The position numbers were made by a program, and so were the translations under genes. A stretch of DNA of 64,000 nt from Hemiscyllium ocellatum (lineage: Eukaryota): assembly GCF_020745735.1 (NCBI RefSeq), contig NC_083428.1, positions 24,428,001-24,492,000 on the forward strand, written 5' to 3'. The first letter of the stretch is position 1. Each line of letters starts with the position of its first letter. Below the pieces are notes generated by a model. That model ran no database searches. It was not told the DNA's origin and was given only the letters and a program-made list of their open reading frames with translations. Shown in pieces: positions 25,142-64,000 of this stretch.

Positions 25142-25669
25142 GTGATGCATCGGCGCCCGACCGACCTTAAAAGCGCCGAGAGGCTCGAAATAGACCATTT
25201 AAAAGCTGTGTCTACGATTCTGATATCAAGCCTAAATACTTGTAGTTGCAGGAAATGTGGAATTTTATTTTAAAAGGCGCTGGCAAAGAACTAGATGATG
25301 TTTATTAGAATTTAGAACAAGGCCAGCCAATAACCCACCTAATTTCCAGAGACCAGCTGTCATTTAAAAAAATACTTTTATTGAGCAGTCATATTAAAGG
25401 GGCAGTAAACATGACTTTTTCCCAATTCTGTTCCAATTATTCCAAGCTTAATTCAAACATCGTCTGTGAGCGAAACAGCGTTGCTGTTAAGTAACTAATA
25501 AAATCATCAATTTAAAAATGAACCCTGCAGGAAAATGCTGCAAATATGGCTTCATGTAGATCTCTATCCCTTAGCTACGTCGATGTCTGCAGTCATTCAG
25601 CCAGTTCACAATCTGCTGCAACAGAAAAATGTCAGATCCATTTAATTGCATTTTATGCTGTTATTTCAG

Positions 25670-25746
25670 GTGAAGCACTGGGAGCTATTGGAAAACCAGA
25701 GGTCCTTGAAACATTGAGGTATTACTCACATGATCCAATAATAGAA
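25670..25746 (+). CDS. DOHH: DOHH coding exon 2
   Basis: TTTCAG|(G)EALGAIGKPEVLETLRYYSHDPIIE|GTAAGG; 77 nt. Confidence 0.95.
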
Positions 25747-25919
25747 GTAAGGATAGTTTAATTTCATTTCTTATGAATTAGTTAAAATGATCTTGAGACA
25801 CAATCATCTCTGTCTTATTTCTATCTCTGTATCATTACCCAACAGCATCCCTACCTCTTATCTGCAGCTGAAACTGCATCCTTGCTCCCCTTGATCCTGA
25901 CTTGACTATTTCACTCACT

Positions 25920-32945: not shown

Positions 32946-34034
32946 AAAAATGTGGGTGAGCTACTATCTTGAACTACTGTGGACTTTGGTTTGTAGGTAC
33001 GTCCACAGTGCATTTGAAAGGAAGTTCCAGGATTTTGAATCGATGATCGTGAAAGAGCAGCAATATATGCCTTGGCAGACACCTTGGAGGTGATGGTATT
33101 CCCACCAATCTGTTCTTCTCCTTCCAGGTGGTGATGGTTGTGGATTAGGGCAGTGTCAAAGGAGTCTGGATTTGTTGCTCCAATGTATCTTATAGAAGTA
33201 CACAGTGCTCCCACTGTGCTTTGGTACTGGACGGAATGAATGTTGAGGGTACTGAATAGAGTGCCATGCTGCTTGGTCCTGGGTAGTGTTCAGCTGCTTC
33301 AGTGTTGTTCAAGTTGCTCTCCCCCAGATTAGGAAAGACAGTTGCATTGCACGCAAGTTTCATGCCTTGCTGATAATAGACAGGCAGTGGTGTGAATTAC
33401 CCAGAGGATTCCTTGCCTTTTACCCACTCTTGTAACCATAGCATTTATATCACAGACACAGTTCAATTTCTGGTAACTTTCCATGATGTTTGTGGATGAT
33501 TCAGTGATGGTAATACCATTGGAAGGACCCTTCAAGTTTCACTTGCATATGCTAGGTGAAGCATATATTAATACTCAGTGTACTTTATTGCAGATAAGAG
33601 AAAAAGGCGTGCACAATGCCTGTTCCATCTCAACAAAATAGATGACAGCCCTGACCAATGGGAGTCATCTTGCCTGGTTTAAAATTTAAACCAGCCCGGA
33701 ATGTTAACTGATTCAGTATTAATGAGCGCATTCTCCATGGCAACAGATCTACAATGAGTTCACTTGCCAACCAATCACCAGTCTTCTCTCATGCAGTCCG
33801 AGTGTTGGTTTCTGGCTTGAATTTATATTCTTGTGAATTGTCGTGATGAATGTGAGTCAAAAATCTTAAACCATGCTCAAGTTCTCTACTAACGAATAAT
33901 TATATATCAGGAAGTTGGCTTATAGCTTAATCAGTAGATTTTCCAGTCTTAATTTTGCCAGATCTTTTCGAAGTATTTGCTATTTTGATTTGCATTTGGG
34001 TGAAGATATTTCATCTTATGTATATTTCCCTCAG

Positions 34035-34372
34035 GTTTGCAGTGTGAAAGTGCCTTGTTTCGTCACGAAATTGGCTATGTCTTTGGCCAAATGCAGCATG
34101 ATGCCAGTATTCCACAACTTATAACTGCATTGAAAAAACTGGATGAAAATCCCATGGTCCGTCATGAGTGCGCAGAAGCTTTAGGATCGATTGCCAAAGA
34201 ACCATGTGTGGAAATATTGAAAGAATATCTACATGATGAAGAACGTGTTGTGAAGGAGAGTTGTGAGGTAGCACTGGACATGCTTGAATACGAAAATAGT
34301 CCAGAGTTTCAGTATGCAGATACATTGATTAAATTGCAAAAAACGGAGTCCGGGAATAGAACATTGCCTTAA
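34035..34372 (+). CDS. DOHH: DOHH coding exon 4 (terminal); spliced CDS 924 nt, 307 aa
   Basis: CCCTCAG|(G)[20 protein letters not shown]...[16 protein letters not shown]...[25 protein letters not shown]...TAA; candidate AATAAA at 35007-35012. Confidence 0.96.
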
Positions 34373-49025: not shown

Positions 49026-49089
49026 ATGACTTTTCATTGCCGAGTCCTCATTGCTTTACTTTTAACTAATGTAGTAAATGCACAGGCTG
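49026..49089 (+). CDS. SMIM24: SMIM24 (MAP17/PDZK1IP1 family) exon 1, signal peptide
   Basis: MTFHCRVLIALLLTNVVNAQA G|GTAAGT; phase 1 and in frame with the TM exon at 57418. Confidence 0.75.
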
Positions 49090-57417: not shown

Positions 57418-57538
57418 GCGCACCAAAAGCAACCTCCAGCGGAGGCTGGGAGCCTTGGCTAATTGGACTCACTGCTGTCACTGTGTTCATTTTCATCGTC
57501 TTTGTCCTGTTGATAATGAACAGGACTTTTTGTACAAA
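57418..57538 (+). CDS. SMIM24: SMIM24 exon 2 (transmembrane segment)
   Basis: TTCAAAG|(G)APKATSSGGWEPWLIGLTAVTVFIFIVFVLLIMNRTFCT AA|GTAAGT; PWL-GL--V--F-FIV---L--NR--C family motif. Confidence 0.9.
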
Positions 57539-58404: not shown

Positions 58405-59092
58405 GGTGGCTCAGTGGTTAGCACTGTTGCCTTATGGCAGTGGGGACCCGGGTTTGATTCTATCCTTGGGCAACTGTCTGTGTGGAGTTTGCACATTCTC
58501 CCCGTGTCTGCGTGGGTTTCTTCCCACAGTCTGAAAATGTGCAGGTTAGGTGAATTAGCTGTACAAAATTGTCCATAGTGTTCAGGGATGTGTAGGTTAG
58601 GTGCATTAGACAGAGGTAAGTATCAGTTAGGGGGAATGGGTTACTCTTTGAGGGGGTCAGTGTGGACCTGTTGGGCCAAAGGGCCTGTTTCAACACTGAA
58701 AGATTAATCTTGTAGACGAACATCACTTTTTAAAATTGGGTTGATTAGGTCCGAATGGGCCATCTGCCTGAGATGCAAATGAAGATGTTCAATGTTAATA
58801 CCTAAATGGACCTTCATTTCATAGAATCATAGAATCCCTACAGCGTGAAAGCAGGTCATTTGGCCCATTGAGTCCACACCAACCTTCTGAAGTGCATCGC
58901 ATCTAGACACAGCCCCCACTGTATCCCTGTAATCCTTCATTTCCCATAGATAGCCCATTTACTCTGCACATCTTTGCACTGTAGGAGGAAACCCATGCAG
59001 ACACAGAGAGAATGTGCAAACGCCACACAGACAGTTGCCCAAGTCCTTGGTGCTGTGAGACAGCAGTGCTAACTACTGAGCCATTGTACCAT
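58405..59092. mobile_element. Two HE1-related SINEs in opposite orientation (58405-58700 plus; 58820-59092 minus)
   Basis: SINE heads at both outer ends. Confidence 0.8.
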
Positions 59093-59448
59093 CCATTTAA
59101 TAATAACAGCTTGGTTATAGTCTAGTAGTGGAAAATATGATTATGAAAGCTCGTGGATTTTTGTAAAGATCCTACTGGATCAACAAGTCCTTCAGGAAAT
59201 AAATCTGCCCAGACCTCTTCTGACAAAAATGTGACTCCAATATCACAATGTTCCTTCATGCCTCCTGAAGAGTCCTGGTAAGTAAATCCATTGGGGAAAG
59301 AATTACATGGCGAATGCATCTTGGAGGCAAGCTGCTAATGCTGCTATATCCTAAGAGCAAGATCTATGATACAGTCCTTAACAATGTATCCTAGACACTG
59401 GTAGAAGGACTGCTATGCTAGTATTGATCCAAGTGTTACTTTTTGTAG

Positions 59449-59496
59449 GAATAAGAATCAAGGGGACTCTGACAATAACCATTCTGGCGGTGATGA
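59449..59496 (+). CDS. SMIM24: SMIM24 tail microexon A (48 nt, phase 2-2)
   Basis: TTTTGTAG|G AAT AAG AAT CAA GGG GAC TCT GAC AAT AAC CAT TCT GGC GGT GAT GA|GTAAGT; in frame with exon 2. Confidence 0.75.
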
Positions 59497-60685
59497 GTAA
59501 GTATTTCGTTGTCATATAAACACTCATTTCTTTTAACAAATTGTTATTTTGAGTGAACAATAATGATTTATTCAATTTCTACTATTTCTTGTAAAATCAC
59601 AACAAAAATATAAATAAACTAATGTTTTAGTTAAGCTATTGATGTTTTATTGTGTTAAAGAGACTTCTATATGCAATGCTAGACCAGTCAGAAATGCAAT
59701 GTTTATACTCAGTATCATTCAAATGTGCTCTCACTCAAGATTTGCTCTCAAAGCCACGTTCCCCTTACTGAAGCTCACTAGATGTTGGCACAGGGTGGCA
59801 GAAGCTAATTAGTCACCCAAAGTTCAGGGCCCATCTCCATTCTCCACAACCATGCTGGAAATTAATAATAGTTTTTCCTGTAGTTTGGCAAATAATTGTC
59901 AAGGACTTGACTTTGGGCAGGATGTCAAGGGAAAGACATACAAACTAACCAACCATTTCTAGAAGGGATAGATAGCTCAAAAACTCCTGAAAACATATGA
60001 GATTGATCCTCAATAAATGATAGCCCCCAAACAGCAGGTCAATGATGATTAAATTGCTATCCACATCTATGGGGACAGGCTAATTTGAAGTGCATGAACG
60101 AAACTGATTGAAGAAAGGATGCTGGTGAAGGACTGACAATGATGAGATAATTCTGCAGTAACTCAGCTACCAGTGAAACTGATGATTAATCATCATAATC
60201 TGGATGGGTTAGGAGTCTTTATTGAGTACTGTAGGAATAACAAAAATCAGCTCAAAGTCTGCAAGTGAGCAGGCTAGGTATTGTTAGTAAGTGTGCCTAG
60301 ATGTAGCAAGACAGTGGAATGACGAGTTTTGTCATTTATCCTCCCCTAGAATTGTTACAAAATGGGACATAGTCTCAGTGTGGAATGGAGTCCTTCCCCC
60401 TTCGATTCCCATAGTTAGCAATTCATACAATATAGGCCTTGATCTTGATTGAAATTTGGGATTAAAATGTTCAATAGGAAGTTTAGTCTAATATCTGTTT
60501 CATTGTTTTTAGCTATTACCCAGGTAAATTGTATTAAATATTGGATGTAGCTTGTGAATGCTGCCATATCCTGAGATTAAAAAAAATCAATGGGTGTAAG
60601 ATCTGCAGTAAAATACTTAATTATGCATTTAAACAGCATTGGAAGGACTATTGTGTTGTATTGACCCAAGTGTTATTTTTTATAG

Positions 60686-60724
60686 GCGTGTGAAACAGGA
60701 CATTGAACTATTGCCTGAGGATAG
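60686..60724 (+). CDS. SMIM24: SMIM24 tail microexon B (39 nt, phase 2-2)
   Basis: TTTTATAG|G CGT GTG AAA CAG GAC ATT GAA CTA TTG CCT GAG GAT AG|GTAGGT at the homologous position in unit 2. Confidence 0.68.
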
Positions 60725-61209
60725 GTAGGTGTTTCTTTGTCATACAAGCATAGATGTCTTTTCACAAATTGTTGCTATTTTGAGTGAACAATAATAATGT
60801 ACGTAATTTCTAATACTCCTTAAAAATCACAGCAAAATATAAGTAAACTAAAGTTTCAGTTGAGTAAATGTTATTTTATTGTATCAAAGAGACTTCTGAA
60901 TGCAGTGCTGGACCAGTCAGAAATGCAATGATTGCACTCAATATCTTTCAAATGTACTCTCACTCAAGAGGTGGTGACATTTAATTTGCTCTTAATGCCA
61001 CGTTCCCCTTACTGAAGCTCACTGGATGTTGGCACAGGATGGCAGGAGCTCATTAGTCACCCAAATTTAAGGGCTCACCTTCATTCACCCATCCATACTA
61101 AAAAATAATAACATCTTTTCTGTAATCTGGAAAATCATTATCAATGATTTGAATTTGTGTGGAAACTCAAAGGGAGGATATCCAAAAAAACTCAAGATTA
61201 ACCAGCCAT

Positions 61210-61686
61210 TAATGATGATTGATCATTTGTTTTTACTGGTAGCTGAGTTGTAACAGAAGTAACCCATCATTGTCGGCCCTTCTTCAACATCCTTTCTTCC
61301 ATCAGGTTGGTTCACAAACTTCATATCAGCCTGTCCCCAGAACCTTCTCAATTGCGAGCACATTTGACCTGCTGCTTGGGCTATCACACATTGAGGACCA
61401 ATTTCACATGTCCTATGCTTTCTAGAGATTTTGAGCCATCAATCTATGAAGGATTGATGGCTCAAAATCTCTAGAAAGCATAGGACATGTGAAATTGGTC
61501 CTCAATGTGTGATAGCCCAAGCAGCAGGTCAAATGTGCTCACAATTGAGAAGGTTCTGGGGACAGGCTGATATGAAGTTTGTGAACCAACCTGATGGAAG
61601 AAAGAATGTTGAAGAAGGGCCGACAATGATGGGTTACTTCTGTTACAACTCAGCTACCAGTAAAAACAAATGATCAATCATCATTA
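61210..61686. repeat. Near-perfect long inverted repeat, 235-bp arms, 7-nt spacer
   Basis: 61210-61444 is the reverse complement of 61452-61686; two mismatches seen; spacer TATGAAG. Confidence 0.95.
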
Positions 61687-62167
61687 TCTGGCTGGGTTAG
61701 GAGCCTTTATTGAGTACTGTAATCACCAGCTCTCAGTCTGTAAGTGAGCAGGTGATGTAATGTTAGTACGTGTGCCTAGATGTAGTGAGAAAGCTGAGTG
61801 ACAAGTTTTGCCATTTATCATCCCCTAGAATTGCTGCAAAATGGGACAAAGTCTCAGTGCGGAATGGAGTCCTTCCCCCTTCGATTCTCATAGTTAGCAA
61901 TTCATACAACATAGGCCTCGATCTTGATCAAAACTTGGGATTAAAGTGTTCGATAGGAAGTTTAGTCTAATATCTGCTTCATTGTTTTTAGCTATTCTCC
62001 AGGTAAATTGTATTTAATATCGGAAGTAGGCTTGTTAATGCTGCCATATCCTGACAGCAAAAGAAATTTAATAGTCACAAGATATGTGGTACAGTCCTTA
62101 ACAAAGTATCCTAGACACTGAAGATGGACTGTTATGTTAGTTATAAACCAAGTGTTACTTTTTATAG

Positions 62168-62215
62168 GAATAAGAATCAAAAAGACTCTGACAGCAACCA
62201 TTCTGGTGATGATGG
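62168..62215 (+). CDS. SMIM24: SMIM24 tail microexon A' (48 nt, phase 2-2)
   Basis: TTTTATAG|G AAT AAG AAT CAA AAA GAC TCT GAC AGC AAC CAT TCT GGT GAT GAT GG|GTAAAT. Confidence 0.68.
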
Positions 62216-63439
62216 GTAAATGTTTCACTGTCATATAAGCATTAATGTCTTTTTACAAATTGTTGTTATTTTGAGTGAACAATAAAGATTTTTTCAATTT
62301 CTACTATTTCTTCCAAAATCACAGCAAAAATGTAAGTTAACTAAAGTTTTAGTTGAGTTAATGTTGTTTTTTTGTATGACGAATACTGCTTCATGCAATG
62401 CTAAACCAGTCAGAAATGCAATGATTGCACTCAATCCCACTCAAATGTGGTCTCACACAAGAGGTGGTGACATTTAATTTGCTCTTAAGGCCATGTTCCC
62501 CTTACTGAAGCTCACTGGATGTTGGCGCAGGATGGCAGAAGCTAATTAGTCACCCAAAATTCAGGGACTGCCTCTATTCCCCACACCATGATGGTAATTA
62601 ATATTTTCTTTTCTGTAGTTTGGCAAATAATTGTCAAGGACTTGACTTTGGGCAGGATGTCAAGGAGAGGACATACAAAAAAAACTGAAGACTAACCAAC
62701 CATTTCTAGAAGGAATAGATAGCTCAAAAACTCAAAATATGACATATGAGATTGACCCTCAATATGTGATAGACCAAGCAGCAGGCCAGCAGTGCTCCCA
62801 ACTGGAATGATTCAATTCCTATCCACATCTATGGGGACTGGCTGATTTAAAGGTACGAACCAAACTGATGGAAGAAAGGATGTTGAAGAAGGGTCAACAA
62901 TGATGAGGTATTTCTGCAGTAACTCAGCTACCAGTGAAACCAATGTTTGATCATCATAATCTGGATGGGGTAGGAGCCTTTATTTAGTACTGTCAGACTA
63001 ACAAACATCAGTTTGCAGTCTGTAAGCAAGCAGGCTAGGCTATATTACTAAGTCTGCCTAGATGTAGTGAGAGAATTGAGTGACGAGTTTTGTCATTTAT
63101 CCTTCCCTAGAATTGCTGCAAAATGGGATGAAATCTCTTTGTGGAATGGAGTCCTTCCCACTTCTATTCCCATAGTTAGCAATTCATATAACATAGGCCT
63201 TGATCTTGATTGAAATTTGGGATCAAAGTGTTCAATTGGAAGTTTAGTCTGATATCAGTTCATTGTTTTTAGCTGTTTTCCATATATATTGCATCAATAT
63301 TTCTTTTTTTGGAATTACAAAATAGTAGAAGTAGTAATAAGATAGAAATTACTGAACAGTTTGTGTGTACTGAAAGTGAAGCTAATTCTTTTCAGCAAAT
63401 ACTCTGATCTCAGTGACGAAAACACTGAACTAAACCTGC

Positions 63440-64000
63440 TAATGCATCCACACCAGTACCTGTCTACATTCATGGGACACCACCAGCTGCAGGTTCTCCT
63501 CCAAGTCACACCAACAGCCACGTGACATTATATTGCTCTTCTTCACTGTCACTGGATCAAAGTCCTTTAGCTCCCTGCTCAACAACATCATGGGTGGACC
63601 TACACCATGACAGCTGCAGCAATTCACCTTCTCAAGGACAATTAGGCTGGCAATTATGAATCTGAGATTCAAAGTGACCTTTGGTCCTAAAGTGTCTGTG
63701 ACAACCTCCTTAATATCTTCTATTGCCTGCTGCAGCATTACACTGAATAAGATGGTGAATTAGTTATGGGTGAGCCCACATTCCTGCTTCATATTGAAGG
63801 TTTGGAAGGGATTCCAGAGGCTGACCTTGTGCTTGATTTGTCTGTACTAATTTTTGTGAAACTATTTCAGTGTGGCAGGATGTAGGTGGGCAATCAAGTT
63901 TATTCAGGATTTTCCAAAGTCCGTTTATGCTCACAGTTTTGAATGCCTTGGTGTGGGCTGAGAAAGAGAGGTAAAACCCTTTTCTTGTATCTTTACATAC
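63440..64000. mobile_element. Degenerate non-LTR retrotransposon fragments following the third cassette
   Basis: Similarity to the cassettes ends ~63300; downstream sequence looks like decayed LINE and Deu-SINE-associated sequence. Confidence 0.45.

Follow-up and report, generated by a model that had tools for sequence, protein, structure and literature searches.

A stretch of 64,000 nucleotides (nt) from Hemiscyllium ocellatum (assembly GCF_020745735.1, contig NC_083428.1, forward-strand positions 24,428,001 to 24,492,000), which we call the window, appears to carry five of the six coding exons of a shark SMIM24 (MARDI) orthologue, a gene that is a paralogue of MAP17/PDZK1IP1. Three of these exons are microexon cassettes, here named A, B and A', which lie one in each of three tandem repeat units and would lengthen the tail of the protein between its membrane helix and its C-terminal end. 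We favor the explanation that a single ancestral cassette was multiplied by tandem duplication of a genomic unit, that the outer and middle copies then diverged in sequence, and that all three copies would be included in the product of the window species; to this explanation as a whole we give a probability of roughly 0.8.

Three microexon cassettes in a tandem array

The array (59330-63300) is made of three tandem units of 1.2-1.5 kilobases (kb) each. In a MAFFT alignment of ~1.2 kb, unit 1 is 81.0% identical to unit 2 and 84.4% identical to unit 3, and units 2 and 3 are 79.1% identical; the most closely related pair is that of units 1 and 3. A repeat search finds 18 direct-repeat families in the array with a spacing of 1.22-1.49 kb; Tandem Repeats Finder (TRF) reports nothing across it, because the period exceeds that program's 500-nt limit. 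The cassettes are in register, falling in the same alignment columns in all three units, each with a pyrimidine tract, a YAG/G acceptor and a GT donor. Their lengths of 48, 39 and 48 nt are all multiples of three, and each cassette is entered and left in phase 2, which matches the phase-2 end of the transmembrane (TM) exon. The spliced frame stays open, reading ...FCTK NKNQGDSDNNHSGGDE RVKQDIELLPEDR NKNQKDSDSNHSGDD(G). An earlier first-pass annotation of the window had claimed all of this, namely the three units with a microexon at the same position, the AG/GT-bounded lengths and phases, the open frame, and the greater likeness of units 1 and 3; alignment and direct reading of the sequence bear it out.

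How much weight can an open frame of this size carry? Between 57539 and 64000 there are 214 AG..GT-bounded open intervals with a length divisible by three, so an open frame by itself means little, and the case for the cassettes rests on their register and on homology to annotated shark exons. Only the three cassettes among those intervals also show splice signals this good; the background of intervals with equally good signals is 0.24 per kb, or about 1.6 expected by chance over the same region.

The homology comes from five other sharks, for which genomic loci of the zebra shark (L001), the whale shark (L002) and the sevengill shark (L003) were compared, and Chiloscyllium plagiosum (bamboo shark) and Scyliorhinus canicula (catshark) were compared as proteins. 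The C. plagiosum protein XP_043576666.1 (SMIM24-like, 127 residues) reads ...FCTK, NKNQGDSDNNHSGGDE, CVKQDIELLPEDR, NKNQKDSDSNHSGDDG, TAASNEYCNPAIIEDEKRTNL, with the cassettes in the A-B-A' order of the window. All five window exons match this protein by tblastn. The cassettes are identical at 44 of 45 residues, as against 51 of 61 (ten differing) in the N-terminal part (Fisher p 0.023). Two isoforms are modeled for the zebra shark, Stegostoma tigrinum: X1 has a B-like and an A-like cassette, and X2 (XP_048416018.1) has the B-like cassette only, A being skipped. The single model of the whale shark, Rhincodon typus, has B and a 54-nt A, and the single models of the catshark and of the sevengill shark, Heptranchias perlo (XP_067824804.1), each have one B-like cassette.

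A B cassette is found at the corresponding place in every shark model examined. In the family alignment it aligns with a linker of fish and bird SMIM24 that ends in a nearly invariant Arg, and the A cassettes are insertions found only in orectolobiform sharks; no repeated cassette is present in the aligned fish, bird or other vertebrate proteins. At the nucleotide level, window B aligns with the B exons of whale, zebra and sevengill shark, and the A exon of the zebra and whale sharks is orthologous to window A'. Of the nine exon copies compared, eight retain the AG acceptor and GT donor. Cassette lengths in the relatives are 48, 54, 48, 48 and 48 nt, and the two indels seen in exons (-9 and +6) are divisible by three, whereas the flanking introns carry indels of 1-2 nt. 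A search with the bamboo shark protein brought up no other protein or isoform from a hemiscylliid; the product of the window itself was not among the sequences searched. Comparative support for all three pieces as genuine coding exons of SMIM24 is strong.

Table 1. Features of SMIM24 and its surroundings, in window coordinates; a slash marks a splice boundary
Feature	Position	Strand	Description
DOHH (deoxyhypusine hydroxylase), last coding exon	34004-34369	+	residues 200-294 of human DOHH, PDB 4d4z, E 3.6e-55
SMIM24 coding exon 1	49026-49089	+	start codon and signal peptide MTFHCRVLIALLLTNVVNAQA; phase-1 end; donor gtaagt; open reading frame; tblastn to shark SMIM24 residues 1-21
TM exon (..GGWEPWLIGLTAVTVFIFIVFVLLIMNRTFCTK)	57418-57538	+	phase-2 end, AAA/gtaagt; PF15807; tblastn; helix in the orthologue's AlphaFold model
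Repeat unit 1	59330-60549	+	1220 nt
Cassette A	59449-59496	+	48 nt, phase 2-2, NKNQGDSDNNHSGGD(E); ...tttttgtag/G ... GA/gtaagt; identical to C. plagiosum SMIM24-like residues 62-77
Repeat unit 2	60550-62029	+	1480 nt, includes the lineage-specific inverted self-copy
Cassette B	60686-60724	+	39 nt, phase 2-2, RVKQDIELLPED(R); ...ttttttatag/G ... AG/gtaggt; 12/13 residues identical to C. plagiosum; orthologous to the one ancestral cassette
Fold-back in unit 2	61210-61686		arms 61210-61444 and 61452-61686, 235 nt each, 99% complementary, 7-nt loop
Repeat unit 3	62030-~63300	+	~1270 nt; array end; collinear with whale shark last intron onward to 63973
Cassette A'	62168-62215	+	48 nt, phase 2-2, NKNQKDSDSNHSGDD(G); ...tttttatag/G ... 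GG/gtaaat; 100% identical to C. plagiosum residues 90-106

History of the array

What history accounts for three units in the window? The whale shark has a three-unit array between the same flanks, window 59137-61215 corresponding to L002 24651-26753 and window 62592-63973 to L002 29104-30472. The exon of its unit 1 (in L002 24932-25082) is still open (NKECDECECNLTADD), has an acceptor changed from TATAG to TATGG, and is left out of the gene model; it is 62% identical to the exon of unit 3 of the same species, compared with 84% for the introns (p 6e-4). Whale shark unit 3 is split by an insert of ~1.2 kb (L002 27885-29103) between its exon-bearing and distal halves. In the zebra shark, unit 1 is reduced to its distal half, the exon part being gone, and is followed by shortened B and A units without distal halves. 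At the sevengill shark locus a single unit follows the upstream flank that is common to the other loci. The count of cassettes across sharks, one B-like cassette in Scyliorhinus and Heptranchias and two or three in orectolobiforms, with A-B-A' in the bamboo shark, agrees with the expansion by tandem duplication that had been proposed from the window alone. A single cassette is, to judge by the one-cassette catshark and sevengill shark, the ancestral state.

The trees add a second layer. The tree of the exon-bearing halves joins the A-type units of different species with one another, and the B-type units likewise (96/95), and the A/B split therefore predates the split of the window's lineage from that of the whale and zebra sharks. 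An intron-only tree of whole units pairs unit 1 with unit 3 inside each species (100/99 and 92/98). Orthology of units by position between window and whale shark was considered, and is rejected for unit 1 (approximately unbiased (AU) p 1.6e-7) and doubtful for unit 3 (p 0.04). Site patterns locate the change of signal: over the first ~300 columns, which hold the upstream flank, exon and proximal intron, 20 sites support orthology by type or position and none supports grouping within species; from column 303 the signal turns to within-species grouping; and over the distal 300 columns of the unit 1/unit 3 quartet, 42 sites support within-species grouping and none positional orthology. We take this to reflect an inherited A-B-A' array in which the distal introns were homogenized within each lineage, presumably by gene conversion. 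That two lineages gained the outer unit in parallel is improbable, because the flanks are identical.

A probable course of events begins with a shark ancestor in which one type-B microexon of 45-48 nt, phase 2-2, would have separated the TM exon from the terminal exon. Among orectolobiforms, a genomic unit of 1.25 kb containing the microexon and its splice signals would then have been duplicated in tandem to three copies, and the outer two exons would have gained a new acidic sequence rich in Asn, Ser, Asp and Gly, the A type. The distal parts of the introns may then have been homogenized lineage by lineage, through gene conversion or unequal exchange, with the ~300 nt nearest the exon keeping the old A/B distinction. 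The relatives would later have lost the first copy, by the acceptor change from AG to GG in the whale shark and by deletion of the exon in the zebra shark.

Two other origins for the array were examined and rejected. As to a transposon, no further copy of the unit occurs in the 64-kb window, and none lies outside the array in ~40 kb of each of the three other shark loci. An assembly artefact does not agree with units that differ by 15-21%, nor with the presence of the same array in the whale shark.

Unit 2 is longer than its neighbors because it contains a 235-nt inverted self-copy. The resulting fold-back belongs to the intron that separates cassette B from cassette A'; of its arms, one is the normal start of the distal half of unit 2 and the other the inverted copy. 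Neither unit 1 nor unit 3 has it, nor do the arrays of the whale shark and the zebra shark, and it is therefore young and specific to the window's lineage; in the pre-mRNA it might fold into a long hairpin.

Other repeated sequences are found nearby. Pieces resembling a short interspersed element (SINE) lie at 58406-58619 and 58795-59098, in the intron that separates cassette A from the TM exon, and further copies are scattered over several unrelated positions of the whale shark locus. In the zebra shark, two direct copies that are 88.6% identical (L001 23967-24614 and 27090-27745) flank the shortened array, and may be a transposon pair or the remnant of a rearrangement that removed part of the array.

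Divergence of exons and introns

The divergence of the cassettes depends on type. Between A and A' of the window there is no difference between exon (83% identical) and intron (85%). Between A and B the exons are 49% identical and the introns ~82% (Fisher p 3.5e-6), and between A' and B the figures are 54% and ~82% (Fisher p 3e-4); the same A/B pattern holds in the whale shark and the zebra shark. The first-pass annotation had noted that exon B departs from A far more than the flanking introns do, and these figures uphold it. If the comparison is made with the ±100-nt flanks only, the A and B exons stand at 49% against 76% (p 0.0015), and A' and B at 54% against 74% (p 0.02). These flanks escaped homogenization, and the A and B exons are still more diverged than they are. 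We attribute the greater divergence of the exons to two causes, that the introns have been made more alike and that the linker encoded by the cassettes is free to change, so long as its frame, length class and polar-acidic make-up stay. The suggestion that the tail is fast-evolving holds at depth, where differences are mostly nonsynonymous and near the intron rate; it does not hold between the two bamboo-shark-like genomes, which differ at one of 45 residues.

Might the A/B difference itself have been selected? On that reading A and B are distinct functional modules held apart by selection, the exons and the nearest ~300 nt having resisted conversion while the distal introns were homogenized repeatedly in two shark lineages, and regulated inclusion of A-type cassettes (acidic and Ser-rich, with CK2-like sites) or B-type cassettes (with DIELL) would tune the trafficking of an SGLT-type partner or its scaffold reach in the shark kidney or gut. 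It leans on the divergence of the A and B exons beyond that of their own flanks (49% versus 76%, p 0.0015). Cassette A has S-x-x-D/E sites that we take to be of CK2 type, and window cassette B reads DIELL, presumably a DxxLL-like sorting signal, which is absent in the whale and zebra sharks. We think this reading unlikely.

Use of the three cassettes

Are all three cassettes used in the window species? It might be that only B and A' are, and that cassette A is a silent or rarely used pseudo-exon, which would leave a two-cassette tail. The fate of the first copy in the relatives speaks for this: that of the whale shark has lost its acceptor and is omitted from the model, and in the zebra shark unit 1 has no exon part. 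So does the intron-like rate at which A and A' differ. The signals of cassette A in the window are intact, however, including the pyrimidine tract and TAG/G, and its donor, GTAAGT, is the best of the three; moreover, the bamboo shark model includes A, and 16 of 16 residues are identical between both genomes. We consider a pseudo-exon quite improbable, and would expect from these comparisons that all three cassettes are included.

A further possibility is that A and A' are mutually exclusive, so that mRNAs would carry A and B or B and A', never all three. Tandem exon duplications are often tied to mutually exclusive choice (PMC9013439, PMC9741552), and A and A' are nearly identical in length and sequence. 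Yet the two are not adjacent, B lying between them, and the gene models do not show exactly one copy per product: B and A occur together in zebra and whale shark, and the bamboo shark model joins A, B and A'. The alternative zebra shark isoform skips cassette A plainly, with no swap. Mutual exclusion is very unlikely in our view. That same isoform, X2, is what upholds the proposal that the tail is skippable, which is thus borne out in a relative only.

That the pieces are not exons at all, and that gene predictors threaded chance open frames of an intronic segmental repeat into their models, is extremely improbable: chance would supply AG..GT open intervals of like quality and exon divergence is near neutral, but a homologous B cassette stands at the corresponding place in all shark models examined and aligns with the Arg-ending linker of fish and bird SMIM24, the splice dinucleotides are kept in all copies save one, indels are multiples of three in exons and not in introns, independent models in three genera include cassettes, and the phase-2 TM exon joins the terminal exon in frame without any cassette, so that predictors gain no frame by adding one.

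Several points weigh against the explanation we prefer, that of a duplicated and fully used set of three cassettes. The supporting proteins are automated gene models only. The exon of unit 1 is dead in the whale shark and gone in the zebra shark, and its use in the window species is not guaranteed. Orthologous cassette exons are 74-81% identical between the window and the whale or zebra shark, compared with 77-83% for the introns, which is near the intron rate, and most of the codon differences are nonsynonymous. No signal of purifying selection on the cassettes is seen at depth, the exons being too short for an estimate of the ratio of nonsynonymous to synonymous rates (dN/dS); at that distance, little in the sequences other than frame, length class, composition and splice sites points to such selection. 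A parallel gain of the outer unit would be another course of events, although an unlikely one. Finally, low values of the predicted local distance difference test (pLDDT) in the structural model discussed below are an indirect sign of disorder.

Identity, neighborhood and end of the gene

The TM exon alone matches the Pfam MAP17 family (PF15807) with E 2.4e-10 and 41 bits, against a gathering cut-off of 29.6; the shark SMIM24 orthologues match with E 1e-16 to 1e-18 (57-65 bits). An exhaustive HMMER search with the TM exon as query returned 61 family members, the best of them shark models named "small integral membrane protein 24" by NCBI, and the close matches in homologue searches all carry the NCBI name SMIM24, not PDZK1IP1. 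Exon 1 was located by way of the shark SMIM24 proteins. Its signal peptide, MTFHCRVLIALLLTNVVNAQA, is followed in the TM exon by a single hydrophobic stretch, LIGLTAVTVFIFIVFVLLIM, as in the MAP17-family layout. Upstream of SMIM24, and on its strand, is the last coding exon of DOHH (Table 1). In the human genome the two genes are adjacent, and an upstream DOHH fits the SMIM24 neighborhood. The assignment to a MAP17-family membrane gene, made before any database was searched, stands on these results.

Two side observations concern the searches. A second open stretch containing EALG, at 25522-25758, has no Pfam match. A representative family search returned P0012, a protein of 2232 residues with five separate stretches resembling the MAP17 TM segment, perhaps an array of tandem genes joined in error, or else a membrane protein of repetitive build from another genome.

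The conserved terminal exon has no match within the window. It should lie at ~65.3-65.8 kb on the window scale, 1.3-1.8 kb past the window's end, because the distance from array end to terminal exon in the whale shark is ~2.0 kb and the coding sequence (CDS) of the bamboo shark spans 16.8 kb; it would encode some 21 residues that include N-x-Y-x-N and finish in K-R-T-x-L. One AG-bounded open stretch, at 63396-63530 on the + strand (KYSDLSDENTEL... / KYSDLSDENTELNLL...), was considered as the terminal exon and rejected, as it is collinear with the last intron of the whale shark and has no terminal-exon match. The stretch bears a faint likeness to the N-x-Y-x-N tail motif, and continues into sequence that resembles repeats. 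The first-pass annotation had guessed, with due caution, that more cassettes might follow the window; in the bamboo shark protein the terminal exon with its PDZ-ligand end comes directly after A', with no fourth cassette, and on that comparison further cassettes are not expected. The C-termini of orthologues are RTSL, RTNL or MTSL, the S/T-x-hydrophobic form of a PDZ ligand.

A possible variable spacer in the tail

The three cassettes encode 45 residues with a net charge of -6, and the A type is 94% Asp/Glu/Asn/Ser/Gly/Gln/Lys. In the AlphaFold model of the bamboo shark protein, helices cover residues 3-20 and 32-64, the latter with pLDDT 73-85, and residues 65-127 are without secondary structure, at pLDDT 42-53; the model is consistent with a flexible tail from 65 to 127. 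MAP17 and SMIM24/MARDI are structurally related, and both raise SGLT2 activity or uptake in oocytes (PMC7462921); the mouse SGLT2 interactome includes Smim24 (PMC10922673).

How might such a tail work? Each cassette is symmetric, its length a multiple of three and its ends both in phase 2, so any subset could be spliced in frame; in the window species all three have intact signals and would together add the full 45 residues. They lie between the membrane helix, the part that contacts the transporter in this family, and the conserved end, encoded past the window, that bears the N-x-Y-x-N and K-x-T-x-L (PDZ-ligand) motifs. The cassettes may thus set the length and charge of a spacer between a transporter-bound helix and a scaffold-binding end, with splicing varying their number. 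Activation of SGLT-type transporters is known for mammalian MAP17 and MARDI (PMC7462921).

Comparison with known systems

No paper on a three-cassette tail or on the bamboo shark SMIM24 tail was found in the literature collection searched. An automated model of a sister genome already contains the three-cassette product. The locus offers a datable case of a predicted-disordered tail that grows by duplication of symmetric microexons, in which single-cassette outgroups, expanded arrays and a decayed copy can be compared across sharks, and one small array displays homogenization of introns alongside divergence of exons. For SMIM24/MARDI, a poorly studied SGLT2 partner, the linker between helix and PDZ ligand would be the evolvable part. 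Sharks supply natural linker-length variants of 16, 32 and 45 residues, which could be used for tests of length dependence.

Among relatives, the closest likeness is that of C. plagiosum, compared at the protein level only, which has the same six-part protein (signal peptide, TM exon, A, B, A' and terminal exon) and a CDS span that fits a terminal exon just past the window. The Stegostoma and Rhincodon genes are orthologous, with B and A orthologous to window B and A', and use only two cassettes. The whale shark array has three units like that of the window, but differs in the lost acceptor of unit 1, the 54-nt A, the insert in unit 3 and the lack of a fold-back. Farther afield, mammalian MAP17 (PDZK1IP1) and SMIM24/MARDI share PF15807, a single-pass helix with a QPW..GLTA motif, an acidic N-x-Y-x-N tail and, in orthologues, a C-terminal S/T-x-hydrophobic PDZ ligand.

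The shark SMIM24 array is a tandem exon duplication, a known source of new exons, and represents no new class of mechanism: exons and introns of the units are homologous (79-84%), the frame is kept, and outgroups have fewer copies. As in the cases treated by Ivanov and Pervouchine (2022, PMC9013439) and Martinez-Gomez et al. (2022, PMC9741552), local duplication has copied an exon along with flanking intron, leaving homologous neighbors that agree in phase and length class. The classic cases are mutually exclusive swaps in folded domains, whereas the shark copies appear additive or skippable and lie in a tail predicted to be disordered. The shark units differ from those cases also in the concerted evolution of their introns beside divergent exons.

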